NCBI GenBank assembly: GCA_024704765.1 | Contig: JAKMXF010000066.1 | Location: forward strand, 1,051,883-1,115,882 | DNA: 64,000 nt | DNA from: Oopsacas minuta | Lineage: Eukaryota > Animalia > Porifera | Reading direction: 5' to 3' | Shown here: positions 33,196 through 49,451 of the stretch, piece after piece | Layout of the letters: each line of letters starts with the position of its first letter | Position numbering within the stretch: the first letter of the stretch is position 1 | Translations under genes and position numbers: made by a program | The notes under the pieces: model-generated | Seen by the model: the letters and a program-made list of their open reading frames with translations, nothing else | The model's database searches: none | What the model was told of the DNA's origin: nothing

Positions 33196-34347
33196 ATGCT
33201 GAAGAAACTCGGAATAATATACATATCAACCTGCGGTGCTATGTTCTTAGGATGGCATTTATCAAACAAACAGAAACTCTACGACTACGTATTGAATCCA
33301 TTTATACAAACATTGCCACCAGAAGTAGCACATACTTTCGTCATTTCAGCTTTACGTAATGGTTTAGTACCAAAAAATCCTCCACAAACAAATCCTATAT
33401 TGAAAACTAAGCTAGCTAATTATGAGATTTGTAGCCCGATTGGCCTGGCTGCTGGTTTTGATAAAAATGCACGAGGCTTGTTCGGCTTATCCAAATTAGG
33501 ATTCAGCTTTTTAGAAGTTGGAACCGTCACGCCCCAAGAACAACCAGGAAATTCCGGACCGCGTCTGTTTAAATTGAAGCGGGATAAAGCTCTTATAAAT
33601 AGGATGGGATTCAATAACGAAGGTGCAGACGAAATGTCCGAACAGATCGATACATTTAAAGACAAACACCCCAAGAATTTCATACTAGGTATAAACATAG
33701 GAAAAAATAAACTTAGTGAGATTGCAGCTATTGACTATAGGATTTGTATTACAAAGCTTGCGTACTGTGCTGACTACTTGGTATTGAATGTATCATCACC
33801 AAACACACCAGGATTAAGAGATCTACAAGGGAAAGAGCAACTATCTCAGCTGCTATTGTCTGTCAAAAGTGAAATGTTAAAACGAAAAGTCGATAAACCT
33901 CTTTTTCTTAAAATTTCACCTGATTTATCTATGGATGGAATCAAAGATATTGTCAGTGTTGTTCAAGCCCCTGACACCCGTGTAGATGGACTTATCATAT
34001 CCAACTCCACGCTAAGACGGAATTTCGACCTCCACGGTCCATACGTCACTATGACAGGTGGACTAACAGGTAAACCTATACGGAACCTTTCAACCCAAAT
34101 GATTCGTATTGTCTACAACTTAACCAATGGGCAGATACCGATTATTGGAGTTGGTGGAGTATTCACTGGTGATGATGCGTTTGAGAAGATCAAAGCCGGC
34201 GCTTCTCTTGTTCAAATTTACACAGCTTTTGTGTATGAAGGCCCTACTGTAGTTAGGCGAATTGAAAATAGGTTAGCCGAATTGTTAGAAGAAAATAAAT
34301 TTAATAATGTTAGTGAAGCGATTGGTATTGAAGCGAATAAGAAATGA
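33196..34347 (+). CDS. DHODH: Dihydroorotate dehydrogenase (quinone), class 2, mitochondrial, intronless
   Basis: PIGLAAGFDKNA, EVGTVTPQEQPGNSGPRLFKL, INRMGFNNEG, LNVSSPNTPGLRDLQG, KISPDL, GGLTGKP, IIGVGGV, GASLVQIYT. Confidence 0.97.
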   Translation: MLKKLGIIYISTCGAMFLGWHLSNKQKLYDYVLNPFIQTLPPEVAHTFVISALRNGLVPKNPPQTNPILKTKLANYEICSPIGLAAGFDKNARGLFGLSKLGFSFLEVGTVTPQEQPGNSGPRLFKLKRDKALINRMGFNNEGADEMSEQIDTFKDKHPKNFILGINIGKNKLSEIAAIDYRICITKLAYCADYLVLNVSSPNTPGLRDLQGKEQLSQLLLSVKSEMLKRKVDKPLFLKISPDLSMDGIKDIVSVVQAPDTRVDGLIISNSTLRRNFDLHGPYVTMTGGLTGKPIRNLSTQMIRIVYNLTNGQIPIIGVGGVFTGDDAFEKIKAGASLVQIYTAFVYEGPTVVRRIENRLAELLEENKFNNVSEAIGIEANKK

Positions 34348-34394
34348 ATATATTTCAAAAAAATTACATTTTTTGCATATTTTGTATTATCGTA

Positions 34395-45094: not shown

Positions 45095-48000
45095 ATGTCA
45101 GATAGACACAGTAGGGATCTAGCTATTTCAAAGCGTATAGCTGAGAACAAGCTCAAAGCATTCTCTATAGGGAAAACTAATCCTATGCCGAAAAAAGGCA
45201 GTGTATTACAACGTAGGGAGAAAGAGCTTGAGAAGAAAAAGTTGGACATTGAAGAGACACAAAACGTATAATTATTTCATCTTCAAAATATGTGATTTTT
45301 TAAATTTATCGCTAGGTTTTTGATGAATTTGTACAATCTTTTGAGGATATTCAGACTGTTGGAAAAACGTTTGTTCGAAGCACAACTAAAAACCCAAATC
45401 CTCCACAAGATATGGGAACTCATTCCCAGTTATACAATCCTGTTGTAGCTCAGAAAATCAAAACAGAAATAGATTTTGATAGAATATCTTCAGATACACC
45501 TGTTAAGCGAAAGAAAAGTAAGTTCAGGTCCTTATTCCATTGCCAAGTCATGGATTTTCAATCTTTCTCCTATTACACCCCAAAATATCCAGAAACATTA
45601 CAAAAATGCCAAATTTTTCTTAGATTCTCGATCTTTTTCCTGAATATGAGTTGAAATAATCCAAGTATCCCGGGAGATTTGGCACGTATGTTATTTTATT
45701 ATTTTTAGCGAAAGAAATGAGGAAAAGTATTTTGGAATCATTCAAAGAAGAATTGAAACGCACACAAAAAGAGAGAGACGATAGACACACACAGAAAAAT
45801 AACGATGAAACAGTAAATACCTCAAATTTCCAAACTGTTCCAAGCACAAATTTACAAACAGCTGATGTACCAAAACCAAAACCATTTGAAATGCTTGAGA
45901 GTGGAGATTCAGTTAGCACTAATCTCTATGTGGGTAAGTACAAGTTAGTATTACCTAATGGAATTTTGGTGTGAACCATTGGAATTTTGAACAATTTTCC
46001 TGTTTTGTATTTTAAATATTTATTTTGTAAGCAAATCATGATTAACATTTTGCTAACCTTGCAACATTTAAGGCAATATTAACCAAAAGATGAACGAAGA
46101 AATGCTATGCCAAGTTTTTGGTAAATTTGGGGCTCTAGCGAGTGTCAAAGTAATGTGGCCGCGAACTGACGAGGAGAAAGCTCGTAATCACAACTGCGGC
46201 TTTGTCGCATACATGAAGCGCGAACACGCAATGCAGGCCTTGAATGAACTTAAAGGGACAAAGCTATTGGATTTTCCAGTCCAACTTGGTTGGGGAAAGC
46301 CAGTGCCACTCCCACTCAATCCAGTCTATGTGCATCCAGATCTGATTAAGATACAGGTAGGAAATAGTGTTATTTCATCATAGGACACAGTTCAAGCTAA
46401 ATCGATTAAAAATTTACTTTTGAACTTTCAATGTTGAAATTGTAATTATTCATTCATATAAGCCTGCTCCCCCACAACTACCTGATCCACCCTCTGGCTT
46501 GCCATTCAATGCTCAATACAAACATAATCCAAAAGATGTACAGTTATTTCTAAGTGAAGGCAATCCTGAGGATCTTATTAAAAGAGACCCTGGTATTCTA
46601 CTCAACAGTCTGATACGCGTGATAATACCGCCTGATGGGGAAATGCAGCTAATACACAGGATGATTGAGTTTGTTGTGAGGGAAGGACCGATGTTTGAAG
46701 CGATGATAATGACGAAGGAGATCAACAATCCTGAATTCAGGTTTGCTTTTTATTAATTTCAGCCCTCAGGTATCTCTCCGTTCCGCTATCCAACGAAACA
46801 TAGCCGCAACTAGGGCCATGACGTCATCTTTCCTATCCAGACTCATGAGCCTAGCTGCGTCTATGCCACGCGGCTACGAAATGCACATTTTTGATTACTT
46901 TTGTGAGAAATTGTTTACTAACTTGTTCACATAGTTATAGTTACATATTTTAAGCTGTACGATTACATCGATAGATAACGGAATATTATTATCTACTTTT
47001 GTATAAAAGGAGGATATAACACACATGTAGATAATAATATTCTTATTGTTATCAGTGAAATTTAGCTGAAAGTCCATTACTGCTCCTTACATCAATTTCT
47101 ACGTATTTCTACATACATGCAATGTATCCAATGTTTGTATATTTTTGGCTCCATTACACACTTGTGCTGACTCGACTTTAGATTTTTGTTTGACAACCAA
47201 TCTCCACAACACGTCTACTACCGATGGAAACTTTTCTCAATTCTTCAAGGCGATTCGCCTGAAACTTGGAAAACTGAAGAATTTAGATTGTTTGAAAACG
47301 GTTCAATTTGGCGACCACCTCTCCTACAACCTGTTGATTTCCCAGAACTCAAATCGAATATTCCAGAAATTGATGTAGTAAAGAAAGGATGTCTCTCAAA
47401 CAGACAACGAGACGATCTTGAAGATATCCTCAGAGAGATTTTGCTGGATAGAAAATCGATTTGTTTTGCAATGGCTTTTTGTATCGATCATTCAGAATCA
47501 AGTGAAGAGATTATTAATTGTATTACAGAGTCTCTGGTTATTCTAGAGACCCCTTTATCAAAGAAAGCTGCCAGATTATATCTCATCTCTGATATAATTA
47601 ACAATTCTGCAGTCCGAATTGAAAATGCTTCTACGTTTCGTAATGGTTTTGAGAAGCATTTAGAAGCTATATTCACACATTTTGCTATTGCATATGAAGC
47701 GATTTCTGATGAGGAACATGCAGAACATTTCAAAATACTTGTTCTAAAGGTTTTGTTTTCATGGGAACGACAGACAATCTTCTCTTCAGATTATCTAATC
47801 AGTAAGTAAATTACATTTACGTATTTAGTGTAAGCGTTTAACCTCCACAAACGAGGCCACATTCCCTATTATAGAAGTTCATTTATATGAGACTAGGAAT
47901 TTGCTCACACTCCGTTTCCACAGCCCCGTTTATGGAGATTACATTGTATGTATACTGATCCTTTTCAAATGAATATTGCTCTAGGATTGAAGCAACTATT

Positions 48001-49451
48001 TCTCCCAAATTCCGATCCAAATATTTTGGCTGATGATAAGATCTTAGAAAATCTTGATGGCCAGCCAATGGAGAATTTCTATGAATCACACGCTACAGAA
48101 TTAGATGGTATTCCTATGGATTCTGAGCTTGATGGAGAACCAATGCAAGGTATGTTTGATCAAGAAGCACATGAAGCAAAGTTCAAACCTATCGGGAGTT
48201 TTGTTTCTGTCGAAACTGAGCAGAAACTTAGTAAATCAAAATGGGAGATGATAGATGATCCTCTTGATGAGATTTTAGAACAGGTTGAGGAGCGAGAACA
48301 GGTTGGCTTACGTACAGTCAACTCCCGTTATATCGAAGCTCAAGGGACTGCGATAATTACTTCGATATAACCGGAGTTCTATATTACCGATAAAATATTT
48401 GTTACTTTGACGGTTTTGTACCGTATCTGTACAATTTCATACTTCGTTATGAACAGAAGTTGACTATGCGTGCATAATTGTGTATTCAACTGGCGATTAT
48501 TGGAATTATATTGATCAATATATTTTCATAGGGAATAATGCAGATTTTGCATATGTAAATTTATCGCAATAGATTATACAAGAGTATTTCCATTTACATA
48601 ATGATATGCAAATCGTCCCTGATAGTAGCTAATCTTACTTTTCCCATAAGAAATTCATCCTACAGGTACAACGTATTGTAAAACCTTCCAAACCGAAAGC
48701 TATCTCTCTACCAGGTGGACTCGGTGAGCAAAATCTAAACGAAAGTATGAGGCTAAAATTAAGAGAAATTGATGCTAAAGTTGCAAAATTTGTTGAAGAA
48801 TTGGAAGGCCTTGATAGTCAGAAAGGATTGGGGAATAAGGTTAATCGTGAGTTTATGCAGCAAAAGATTGAAGAATACCGTAAATTGCTTTTGGAAGATT
48901 TTTATCAGTCAAATAGTCTGGATGACAATCATCCAGTCTCGATGGATATTTCAAAAACTTCAAAGCCATCACATGCAGCCAAAGCTTCGAAATTCTTTTC
49001 CCAGTATACAGACAGTGAGAGCGAGAATTTGATTGAAGAAAGCTATCAAAAAGGGAAAAAGGCGAAATCTCGAAGATCTCATAAATCTGAATCACGGCAT
49101 TCAAGAGATGCCCCGATTTCTATATCCTATTCATTTTCTGATACTCCCAATTCTGACATGGAGTCTCCACCCAGAGGTTTGAAAAGTTCCAAACATGAAC
49201 ACGGTCATCATTCTAAGAAATCGAAACGATCTCGTCACGATTCTTCATCTCCTTTAGAATGTAGGTCAAGTAGAAAAGACAGGAACAAGCTTAAGGATAA
49301 GAGCTATTCTCGCTCCAGGAAGAGGCATTCACATTCTAACTCACCCACTTACCATATAAGCGGAAAATCTAGTAAGAAAGGTCGTCACCAATCCAGCGAC
49401 AGTCAAACCCCCTCTCCACATAAACGGTCAAAGAAATCTAAACACCATTGA
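45095..49451 (+). CDS. U2SURP: U2 snRNP-associated SURP motif-containing protein (SR140), multi-exon
   Basis: [15 protein letters not shown]|[33 protein letters not shown] (RRM), [21 protein letters not shown] (SURP), [26 protein letters not shown] (CID), LREIDAKV (cwf21), Ser/Lys/Arg-rich tail. Confidence 0.95.
45531..45690. repeat. Dispersed repeat family E, in U2SURP intron
   Basis: AAAATATCCAGAAA core and right end CCCGGGAGATTTGGCACGTATG. Confidence 0.5.
47835..47946. mobile_element. MITE, family B (diverged), in U2SURP intron
   Basis: AACCTCCACAAACGAGG ... CCCCGTTTATGGAGATTACATTG-TA. Confidence 0.7.
48315..48466. mobile_element. MITE, family A (opposite orientation), in U2SURP intron
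   Basis: TA-CAGTCAACTCCCGTTATATCGAA ... AGAAGTTGACTA. Internal core inverted (TTACTTTGACGGTTT). Confidence 0.8.

Follow-up and report, generated by a model that had tools for sequence, protein, structure and literature searches.

A run of seven co-oriented housekeeping genes in the glass sponge Oopsacas minuta resembles a spliced-leader operon array

The DNA analysed here is a 64-kb stretch (the window) from the genome of a glass sponge, Oopsacas minuta (assembly GCA_024704765.1), in which an earlier note had described seven co-oriented genes, DHODH-TRMT112-UQCR10-NOC2L-DNA2-TYW5-U2SURP, as a polycistronic unit. All seven identities were reproduced with Pfam, the NCBI gene calls and, for TYW5, a PDB match, and the six stop-to-ATG gaps reported there took the same values on recomputation (Table 1). 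The NCBI gene-call boundaries agree for DHODH, TRMT112, NOC2L, DNA2 and TYW5. The NOC2L product matches the O. minuta NOC2-like protein P0001 at 100%; the DNA2 pieces recognised in the window are PDDEXK/Cas4 and AAA_11 (Pfam), with a spliced joint at 38203>38421 in the RNA contigs; and human TYW5 (PDB 3AL5) is the top solved-structure match of the Cupin_8 gene (E 4e-59). UQCR10 is missing from the gene list that NCBI gives for the source contig. It was detected by tblastn in 7/7 relatives, and in three of them (L003, L010 and L012) it is a called gene with the UCR_UQCRX_QCR9 domain.

Table 1. Genes, spacers and putative processing sites of the run in window coordinates; acceptors marked predicted were read from the sequence.
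Feature	Position	Strand	Description
DHODH upstream acceptors	TAG 33137-33139, AG 33165-33166	+	RNA contig end; foreign letters in a second contig
DHODH	33196..34347	+	Single exon, 383 aa; Pfam DHO_dh E 8e-90; identical NCBI gene call in GCA_024704765.1
Spacer 1, 296 nt	34348..34643	+	MITE-like element 34393-34530; acceptor TAG 34557-34559
Conserved 84-nt block, TRMT112 acceptor to ATG	34560..34643	+	Small hairpin AAAGCGA-N4-TCGCTTT
TRMT112	34644..35045	+	Single exon, 133 aa; Pfam Trm112p; NCBI gene call
Spacer 2, 199 nt	35046..35244	+	Partial MITE 35085-35178; conserved acceptor TTAG/C 35222-35226 (predicted; cut before C)
UQCR10/QCR9	35245..35433	+	62 aa; Pfam UCR_UQCRX_QCR9 E 4e-23
Spacer 3, 172 nt	35434..35605	+	Candidate acceptors TAG 35577-79 and 35586-88 (predicted)
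NOC2L	35606..37835 (exons 35606-36034, 36231-37835)	+	677 aa; Pfam Noc2 E 2e-98
Spacer 4, 121 nt	37836..37956	+	Poly(A)-signal-like element 37867-37872; acceptor TAG 37927-37929
DNA2 nuclease-helicase	37957..43610	+	Multi-exon, 1225 aa; NCBI call with Dna2, PDDEXK_1, AAA_11, AAA_12
Spacer 5, 242 nt	43611..43852	+	MITE ~43653-43836; acceptor TAG 43845-43847 (predicted)
TYW5 (JmjC/Cupin_8)	43853..44875	+	Two exons, 320 aa; Pfam Cupin_8
Spacer 6, 219 nt	44876..45094	+	MITE ~44877-45049, TA-flanked; acceptors ending 45071, 45081, 45086 (predicted)
U2SURP/SR140-like	45095..49451	+	Multi-exon, RS-rich tail; Pfam RRM_1, Surp, CID; last gene of + array

The run is embedded in a much longer array. The plus strand carries 30 of the 31 open reading frames of at least 130 aa in the whole window, so the co-orientation of the seven genes is real but not particular to them. 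Upstream of DHODH, CAND1 and UQ_con share its strand and are similarly spaced, and the array spans ~49 kb (20 or more genes) before it ends at U2SURP in a convergent strand switch, the next large frame (51013-52002) being on the minus strand. The window thus holds a long directional gene cluster bounded by a strand switch, as in kinetoplastids.

MITE-like elements occupy spacers 1, 2, 5 and 6, in agreement with the earlier claim of four such gaps. Spacers 2, 5 and 6 hold copies of one repeat family (D1), matched at 35085-35178, 43653-43831 and 44873-45044, with further copies in introns of DNA2 and U2SURP, and DNA-run depth is up to ~8-fold higher over the copy in spacer 2. The 138-nt element of spacer 1 has terminal inverted repeats of 13-18 nt; no second copy of it was found within the window. 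The family agrees with Tc1/mariner-Stowaway-like MITEs, which are short, non-coding and multicopy, with inverted repeats at their ends and TA on either side; the copy at 44877-45049 has TA flanks. Subtraction of the elements, earlier reported to leave 57 nt between TYW5 and U2SURP and 74 nt between DNA2 and TYW5, gave close values of ~46 and ~64 nt in our hands; these lie near the lengths of the insertion-free spacers of relatives (50-54 and 93-110 nt, respectively). However, the argument for an operon built on this subtraction does not separate co-transcription from independent transcription, because with trans-splicing a spacer insertion is tolerated under either model.

The spacers share a simple layout: a poly(A)-signal (PAS)-like hexamer at or just past the stop codon, followed by a splice acceptor shortly upstream of the next ATG. 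A match between this predicted layout and that of operons resolved by a spliced leader (SL) is supported. PAS-like hexamers overlap or closely follow the stop codons in many orthologues, and after NOC2L such a hexamer is found at +31 to +38 in 6/8 assemblies. A YAG precedes every ATG, and its position is conserved for TRMT112, UQCR10, TYW5 and U2SURP; the UQCR10 acceptor with its following C lies 10-25 nt upstream of the ATG in 8/8 assemblies, and the motif TTAGAATC preceding the TYW5 ATG is common to the window, L003, L007 and L012. In such AT-rich DNA, chance alone puts a YAG within 30 nt of an ATG in about half of cases, so that its mere presence is close to chance expectation, while its conserved position is not.

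Comparison with seven other glass-sponge-like assemblies, which represent at least four deep lineages and whose coding nucleotides are 67-77% identical to those of the window, showed that the order CAND1-DHODH-TRMT112-UQCR10-NOC2L-DNA2-TYW5-U2SURP is kept in 7/7 (six in full, L010 up to DNA2). This conservation is not specific evidence for an operon, since the order is unchanged in L010 and L011 with spacers of 0.3-2.1 kb and microsynteny is genome-wide in glass sponges, nearly half of the genes being syntenic between two of them (PMC10282587). The short same-strand intercistronic distances, 121-296 nt in the window, shrink to 50-141 nt in those relatives that are most compact. TYW5 and U2SURP stand 50-54 nt apart in L003, L007 and L012, DNA2>TYW5 goes down to 93-110 nt, NOC2L>DNA2 measures 116-121 nt (four assemblies) and DHODH>TRMT112 is as short as 141 nt. 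Such lengths are too small for a 3' UTR, a promoter and a 5' UTR together, and with a PAS-like hexamer and three acceptor AGs in them the 50-54-nt spacers have no room for a promoter. The earlier contention that the spacing is too tight for separate promoters is supported for these 50-54-nt orthologous spacers.

The RNA data consist of assembled contigs of one RNA run. Two gaps are bridged by unbroken contigs: contig 26 (34204-34587) runs from DHODH coding sequence through the stop codon into spacer 1 and ends 29 nt past the TRMT112 acceptor TAG, and contig 29 (37474-37957) runs from NOC2L coding sequence through the stop codon and spacer 4 to the DNA2 acceptor, where contig 30 starts at 37928. 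Contig 24 covers ~430 nt (at least 400) upstream of the DHODH acceptor, towards CAND1; its end, at 33167, lies 29 nt beyond the A of TAG 33137-39. Of the RNA spanning adjacent genes that had been called for, the data offer contig bridges at DHODH>TRMT112 and NOC2L>DNA2; contigs cannot prove single molecules. Among the RNA contigs listed, just these three have their end in a spacer, and each stops exactly 29 nt downstream of the A in a TAG (33138, 34558 and 37928), for which the chance is ~2e-4 for AG and ~4e-6 for TAG, and no AG was found at RNA contig ends within coding sequence. Given the 30-nt contig overlap of the DNA runs, this offset means that a second sequence joins at that AG; breaks of this kind are the mark that a foreign leader, joined on at the acceptor, leaves in the graph. 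A second RNA contig carries nine foreign letters, AAAACTTAC, directly 5' of AG 33165-66 at DHODH, and four acceptor sites are all compatible with a leader ending ...AAAACTTACAG. Of the shared leader anticipated at the transcript 5' ends, then, these nine letters are seen at one site, together with contig breaks at the TAGs of DHODH, TRMT112 and DNA2; the full leader is not seen. The RNA analysis took in the run upstream of spacer 5, and at UQCR10 and NOC2L it revealed no leader.

Two controls bear on the origin of the spacer RNA. Repeat-bearing bins rise in the DNA runs but not in the RNA run, which argues against DNA contamination. The two bins of DNA2 intron 1 need nothing beyond the spliced exon contig, which accounts for them exactly (361.8 x 85/197 = 156.1 and 361.8 x 92/197 = 169.0), so there is no RNA contig in this intron, whereas the spacers are covered. 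The bridging RNA may represent a productive polycistronic precursor. The same contig picture would arise if 3' UTRs and outrons overlapped, or if there were ordinary read-through beyond a poly(A) site.

The run looks like SL operon architecture, and the reading that we favour, with about even confidence, is that it forms a piece of a much longer same-strand array in the compact O. minuta genome and not a self-contained operon. The part of the polycistronic claim that stands comprises the spacer layout, the 50-54-nt spacers and the contigs across at least two gaps with their breaks at acceptor TAGs; a single unit of all seven genes, driven by a promoter upstream of DHODH, is not supported. In the proposed mechanism, each gene would have its own 3' splice acceptor, from a few to ~85 nt before the ATG, to receive the spliced leader, and each spacer would contain the upstream poly(A) signal or short 3' UTR and an acceptor and little more, plus a neutral MITE in O. 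minuta. RNA polymerase II would pass from one gene into the next and, for some pairs at least, the upstream mRNA would be freed by 3' cleavage and polyadenylation and the downstream one by SL trans-splicing, the best candidates being TYW5>U2SURP, DNA2>TYW5, NOC2L>DNA2 and DHODH>TRMT112. For TRMT112 and UQCR10, whose RNAs are much more abundant, extra promoters or a much greater stability are probable.

It is quite possible, though on the improbable side, that the genes are instead tightly packed and independently transcribed from promoters of their own in the spacer or in the body of the upstream gene, with the SL trimming a variable outron and the spacer-crossing RNA reflecting 3' UTR overlap or unproductive read-through. 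Contig depths speak for this account: they are ~360-1000 for DHODH, NOC2L and DNA2, ~8000 for TRMT112 and ~88000 for UQCR10, and a single promoter would not readily give such differences of >100-fold between neighbours, even if contig depth measures expression poorly. The persistence of gene order across kilobase spacers fits independent transcription as well, and the authors of the A. vastus study took its 1:100 two-gene reads as run-on errors (PMC10282587). The strongly conserved block directly upstream of TRMT112, aligned in 7/7 loci of the alignment and with the 7-mers CGCTTTT and AAAGCGA at equal distance from the ATG in 6/8 assemblies, could be a promoter element; yet it is likelier to be 5' UTR, because it lies downstream of the acceptor marked by the RNA contig break. 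No conserved 7-mers were found in the four spacers upstream of NOC2L, DNA2, TYW5 and U2SURP, which also counts against separate promoters, as do the 50-54-nt spacers discussed above. TYW5 likewise gives no hint of an embedded promoter: no block of synonymous-site constraint hinting at one was found in its last exon, and its sole intron is ~60 nt.

An arrangement of the kinetoplastid kind, in which the ~49-kb array would be one or a few long polycistronic units started from strand-switch regions, with mRNA levels set post-transcriptionally, seems quite unlikely. The nearly uniform orientation of the array up to its strand switch agrees with it, and so does the situation at DHODH: RNA continues upstream of the putative SL acceptors of this supposed first gene, and in L003 no more than 201 nt separate it from CAND1, a conserved motif of the CAND1 3' UTR lying 78 nt upstream of the DHODH ATG. 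However, the RNA contigs span single spacers at most, the leader was detected on only 4% of A. vastus long reads (PMC10282587), the array far exceeds the usual size of an animal SL operon, and differences in depth as large as these would call for extreme control after transcription. A discrete operon of seven genes with a shared functional theme, running from DHODH to U2SURP and served by one promoter upstream of DHODH, despite its short gaps, co-orientation and conserved order, is very improbable, given that its boundaries are arbitrary next to CAND1 and UQ_con, DHODH appears to be trans-spliced as well, at sites that have RNA upstream, contig depths are very unequal, and no functional theme, the suggested mitochondrial and RNA-processing one included, links DNA2, TYW5, NOC2L and TRMT112. 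With TRMT112 between them and unrelated genes as their other neighbours, the respiratory-chain link proposed for DHODH and UQCR10 is most probably coincidental.

In nematode, tunicate and flatworm operons, 3' cleavage and polyadenylation of the upstream mRNA is combined with SL trans-splicing of the downstream one, and the SL operons of animals normally hold 2-8 genes. The run shares with C. elegans-type operons its unrelated same-strand housekeeping genes, acceptors near the ATG and, in the NOC2L>DNA2 spacer of 116-121 nt, a length like the ~100-120 nt from poly(A) signal to trans-splice acceptor in that system. Unlike in nematodes, there is no sign here of a specialised SL2-type leader, the surrounding array is far longer, and relatives tolerate kilobase spacers. 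The single-SL operons of tunicates (Ciona, Oikopleura) and flatworms, whose intercistronic regions are very short or absent, are approached by TYW5>U2SURP in three relatives, where PAS-like hexamer and stop codon overlap and acceptors adjoin the ATG; here, too, the genome is compact, and a single leader family is plausible. They differ in that MITEs lengthen four O. minuta spacers to 200-300 nt, and for most genes here leader addition is putative. As in kinetoplastid units, tens of unrelated genes follow one another on one strand until a strand switch, SL acceptors precede coding regions and the mRNA levels of neighbours are very unequal; unlike them, the array has cis-introns, leader use is apparently partial in glass sponges (A. 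vastus, PMC10282587), and there is no evidence here of initiation restricted to strand-switch regions.

The published glass-sponge genomes (O. minuta, PMC10280926; A. vastus, PMC10282587) are compact, with extensive microsynteny, an SL of ~37 nt and occasional reads that join neighbouring genes. SL trans-splicing has been reported for glass sponges with A. vastus, in which long cDNA reads join neighbours at ~1:100 (PMC10282587), and is thus already known. Operons are described in neither paper, the O. minuta paper using none of the terms operon, polycistron or spliced leader (PMC10280926), and would be new to sponges. The broader proposition, that glass sponges transcribe long same-strand arrays (this run would be a segment of one that measures at least 49 kb) as polycistronic units resolved by coupled polyadenylation and SL trans-splicing, is in our judgement unlikely. 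If true, glass sponges would be the first sponges, and the earliest-branching of animals, to have operons, in an organisation nearer to that of kinetoplastids than of nematodes.

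The run of seven + strand genes DHODH-TRMT112-UQCR10-NOC2L-DNA2-TYW5-U2SURP (window 33196-49451) has the architecture of operons resolved by a spliced leader (SL), and the chance that some neighbouring pairs, at least, are truly co-transcribed and then resolved by trans-splicing is put at about even. The seven gene identities claimed in the earlier note were all upheld by Pfam, with NOC2L, DNA2, TYW5 and U2SURP searched exon by exon; human TYW5 is the best solved-structure relative of the JmjC gene, and the NOC2L exon matches the protein 'Nucleolar complex protein 2-like [Oopsacas minuta]' at 100% identity. 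For five of the genes, the boundaries agree with the annotation deposited with assembly GCA_024704765.1, of which the window is part (contig JAKMXF010000066.1). UQCR10 is missing from that annotation, in which the gene calls pass from Trm112p to Noc2; it is kept as UQCR10/QCR9 in 7/7 relatives, and its RNA contig has the highest depth of the region. A functional DHODH-UQCR10 module was dropped as unsupported.

The stop-to-ATG gaps were unchanged on recomputation (296, 199, 172, 121, 242 and 219 nt), and the MITEs described in four of them were found again, with one family in three gaps and a different element in the first. Copies of the single family also occupy introns of DNA2 and U2SURP, and the copy in gap 2 has a depth up to about 8-fold higher in the DNA runs. 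Because the MITE after TYW5 separates a PAS-like (poly(A) signal-like) hexamer from the expected cleavage place, the 3' end of the TYW5 mRNA in O. minuta probably falls within this element.

Two word searches, one starting from NOC2L exon 2 and the other from TRMT112, identified seven related glass-sponge-like assemblies, whose coding sequences are 69-77% identical to the window at the nucleotide level. The order and orientation CAND1-DHODH-TRMT112-UQCR10-NOC2L-DNA2-TYW5-U2SURP are kept in all seven, one of them (L010) being readable only to DNA2. Together with O. minuta they make up at least four deep lineages (L003/L007/L012; L009/L010/L011; L008; O. minuta). The growth of the spacers in L010 looks like repeat insertion; its DHODH>TRMT112 (2.1 kb) and UQCR10>NOC2L (1.4 kb) stretches are without a called gene. 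Conserved order alone is weak evidence for an operon, because synteny between two glass sponges is reported to extend to nearly half of their genes (PMC10282587). The average intergenic distance in O. minuta is 2 kb (PMC10280926).

Positions and lengths of features in and around the gene run (window coordinates unless a relative is named)
Feature	Position	Length	Remark
UQCR10 coding sequence	35245-35433	62 aa	
First-gap element		138 nt	terminal inverted repeats; differs from the three-gap family
MITE after TYW5	44877-45049		TA flanks; begins two bases past the stop codon
PAS-like hexamers at stops	34342-34353, 35040-35048, 44870-44878		also at orthologous sites
Conserved block before TRMT112	34560-34643	84 nt	acceptor to ATG
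CAND1 3' UTR block	~32805-32815		
GC-richer segment, U2SURP intron	46790-46880		palindrome at 46819-46826
Sole - strand ORF	51013-52002	329 aa	no family assigned
TYW5>U2SURP spacer		50, 54, 54 nt	L003, L007, L012
DNA2>TYW5 spacer		93-110 nt	four assemblies
NOC2L>DNA2 spacer		116-164 nt	7/8 assemblies
DHODH>TRMT112 spacer		down to 141 nt	
L010 spacers		2107, 528, 1366 nt	gene order unaltered
L010, stretches without a called gene	L010 4266-6372, 7477-8842		
L011 spacers		300, 555, 500 nt	gene order unaltered

In several assemblies, PAS-like hexamers (AATAAA, AATAAT, AATATA) lie on or adjoin the stops of DHODH, TRMT112, TYW5 and DNA2, a placement which implies that the 3' UTRs of these genes would be extremely short; another conserved PAS-like hexamer is found 31-38 nt past the NOC2L stop in six of the eight assemblies. 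A YAG stands close upstream of every ATG, a frequency near chance in such AT-rich DNA, yet the positions are conserved. Predicted acceptors (3' splice sites) are placed at 33139 and 33166 for DHODH, 34559 for TRMT112, 35225 for UQCR10, 35579 and 35588 for NOC2L, 37929 for DNA2, 43847 for TYW5 and 45071-45086 for U2SURP. The predicted UQCR10 acceptor is a TTAG followed by C, 10-25 nt before the gene, in all eight assemblies, TYW5 is preceded by the conserved motif TTAGAATC, and the U2SURP ATG is adjoined by ATTAG-TTAG-CTAG in three relatives.

Four public runs hold this DNA. One of them, X4, behaves as RNA: it contains the GT..AG joint 38203>38421, and the depth of its contigs varies between about 100 and about 88,000. 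RNA contigs were examined over 5,901 nt covering spacers 1-4. Among the X4 contigs listed, only three end in a spacer, and they stop at 33167, 34587 and 37957. Since neighbouring contigs in the DNA runs share 30 nt, the shared 30-mers of X4 begin at 33138, 34558 and 37928, each being the A of a TAG after a T-rich tract. By chance, three AGs would be met with a probability of about 2e-4 and three TAGs with one of about 4e-6; no AG is present at three contig ends that fall within coding sequence. Breaks at a TAG are the behaviour of a de Bruijn graph where a second AG-ending sequence joins. Another X4 contig carries nine foreign letters, AAAACTTAC, immediately before the AG at 33165-66, and all four acceptor sites are compatible with a leader ending in ...AAAACTTACAG. 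This is good but indirect evidence for the addition of a spliced leader to DHODH (at two sites), TRMT112 and DNA2. An SL RNA gene, sought as AAAACTTACAG with a GT donor, was absent from the window and from all loci, so the inferred leader would be encoded elsewhere. In the glass sponge A. vastus, an SL of about 37 nt was reported on 4% of long reads (PMC10282587). Exact-protein look-ups for further RNA of UQCR10, DHODH and TRMT112 yielded nothing beyond the genome assembly, and a TRMT112 homologue search returned genomic relatives and no glass-sponge transcripts.

The 84-nt block before TRMT112 is conserved in all eight assemblies (alignment A1). Because an RNA contig break marks the acceptor upstream of it, the block is read as a conserved 5' UTR, possibly regulatory; it may also be a promoter element. 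Within it are a small conserved hairpin (AAAGCGA-N4-TCGCTTT) and a stretch, AAATTTCG, that may pair with the start-codon region.

The X4 contigs also pass from gene to gene. Contig 26 begins in the DHODH coding sequence (34204), crosses the stop and the MITE and ends past the TRMT112 acceptor. Contig 29 begins in the NOC2L coding sequence (37474) and crosses the stop, the conserved PAS-like element and the DNA2 acceptor. Upstream of the DHODH acceptor, about 430 nt are covered by contig 24, to within 67 nt of the CAND1 stop. X4 depth is one figure per contig, and a contig over two genes demonstrates no single transcript. In the two bins over DNA2 intron 1 the depth equals exactly the exon contig's share (361.8 x 85/197 = 156.1; 361.8 x 92/197 = 169.0); among the X4 contigs examined none lies in this intron, whereas the spacers are covered. 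The intron MITE bin shows a six-fold rise in the DNA runs and none in X4. This arithmetic, on data from which some records are filtered, argues against genomic DNA contamination of X4. It also suggests a higher abundance for RNA of the spacers than for unspliced RNA of the intron.

It is possible, if somewhat doubtful, that the genes are transcribed independently, with read-through and SL trimming only. Long reads that connect adjacent genes occur in A. vastus at about 1:100 and were interpreted as run-on transcripts (PMC10282587). On the other side, the TYW5>U2SURP spacer of L003, L007 and L012 is made up of a PAS-like hexamer by the stop codon and three acceptor AGs by the ATG, which would leave no room for a promoter. 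No 7-mers common to at least six assemblies were found in the spacers before NOC2L, DNA2, TYW5 and U2SURP. Synonymous-site identity, a measure of low power, revealed no constrained block that might mark an embedded promoter in the last TYW5 exon, and only a small rise over the final 15 codons in each of DHODH, NOC2L and DNA2. GC/AT skew of the spacers was uninformative as a sign of transcription, and Rfam and tRNA scans of the window gave no matches.

The seven genes do not form an entity of their own. Upstream of DHODH, the same strand carries CAND1 and a UQ_con E2 gene, and 30/31 ORFs of 130 aa or more in the whole 64-kb window are on the + strand. Very long units of the kinetoplastid kind would fit such an array but appear improbable. 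The array ends at U2SURP, the next large ORF being on the - strand. The sole - strand ORF stands between two + strand arrays. A GC-richer segment of a U2SURP intron contains the palindrome TGACGTCA, a CRE-like site. A conserved block in the CAND1 3' UTR contains TGTATATA, a Pumilio-type UGUANAUA motif. It lies 115-137 nt past the CAND1 stop in 7/8 assemblies, and the CAND1 3' UTR would therefore be at least 140 nt, most of the spacer in compact relatives.

The earlier note had proposed a single polycistronic unit with DHODH as its first gene. Its co-transcription part gains RNA continuity and acceptor evidence at DHODH>TRMT112 and NOC2L>DNA2. One discrete seven-gene operon, despite the conserved order, is very improbable, since contig depths are unequal (DHODH about 600-1000, TRMT112 8000, UQCR10 88,000, NOC2L 700, DNA2 360), DHODH itself has acceptors and upstream RNA, the CAND1>DHODH spacer of L003 is 201 nt with the CAND1 3' UTR motif UGUAUAUA 78 nt before the DHODH ATG, and the conserved block before TRMT112, though read as 5' UTR, could be a promoter element.

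SL trans-splicing has arisen or been retained in scattered animal groups and is known in hexactinellids, and the connection with operons holds a central place in hypotheses on why it evolves. To our knowledge, no sponge has been reported to have operons. Full-text literature searches for nuclear operons in glass sponges gave no report of them, and the terms operon, polycistron and spliced leader are all absent from the O. minuta genome paper (PMC10280926). In such arrays, annotation pipelines merge neighbouring genes or overlook them, as with UQCR10. Spacers of 50-120 nt are conserved here over at least four deep lineages. If they are truly intercistronic, these would be SL operons in a phylum without reported ones, and glass sponges would join the animals with operons as a deep-branching lineage, which could help explain why glass-sponge genomes are compact, hold many nested genes on the same strand and show an unusually stable microsynteny.
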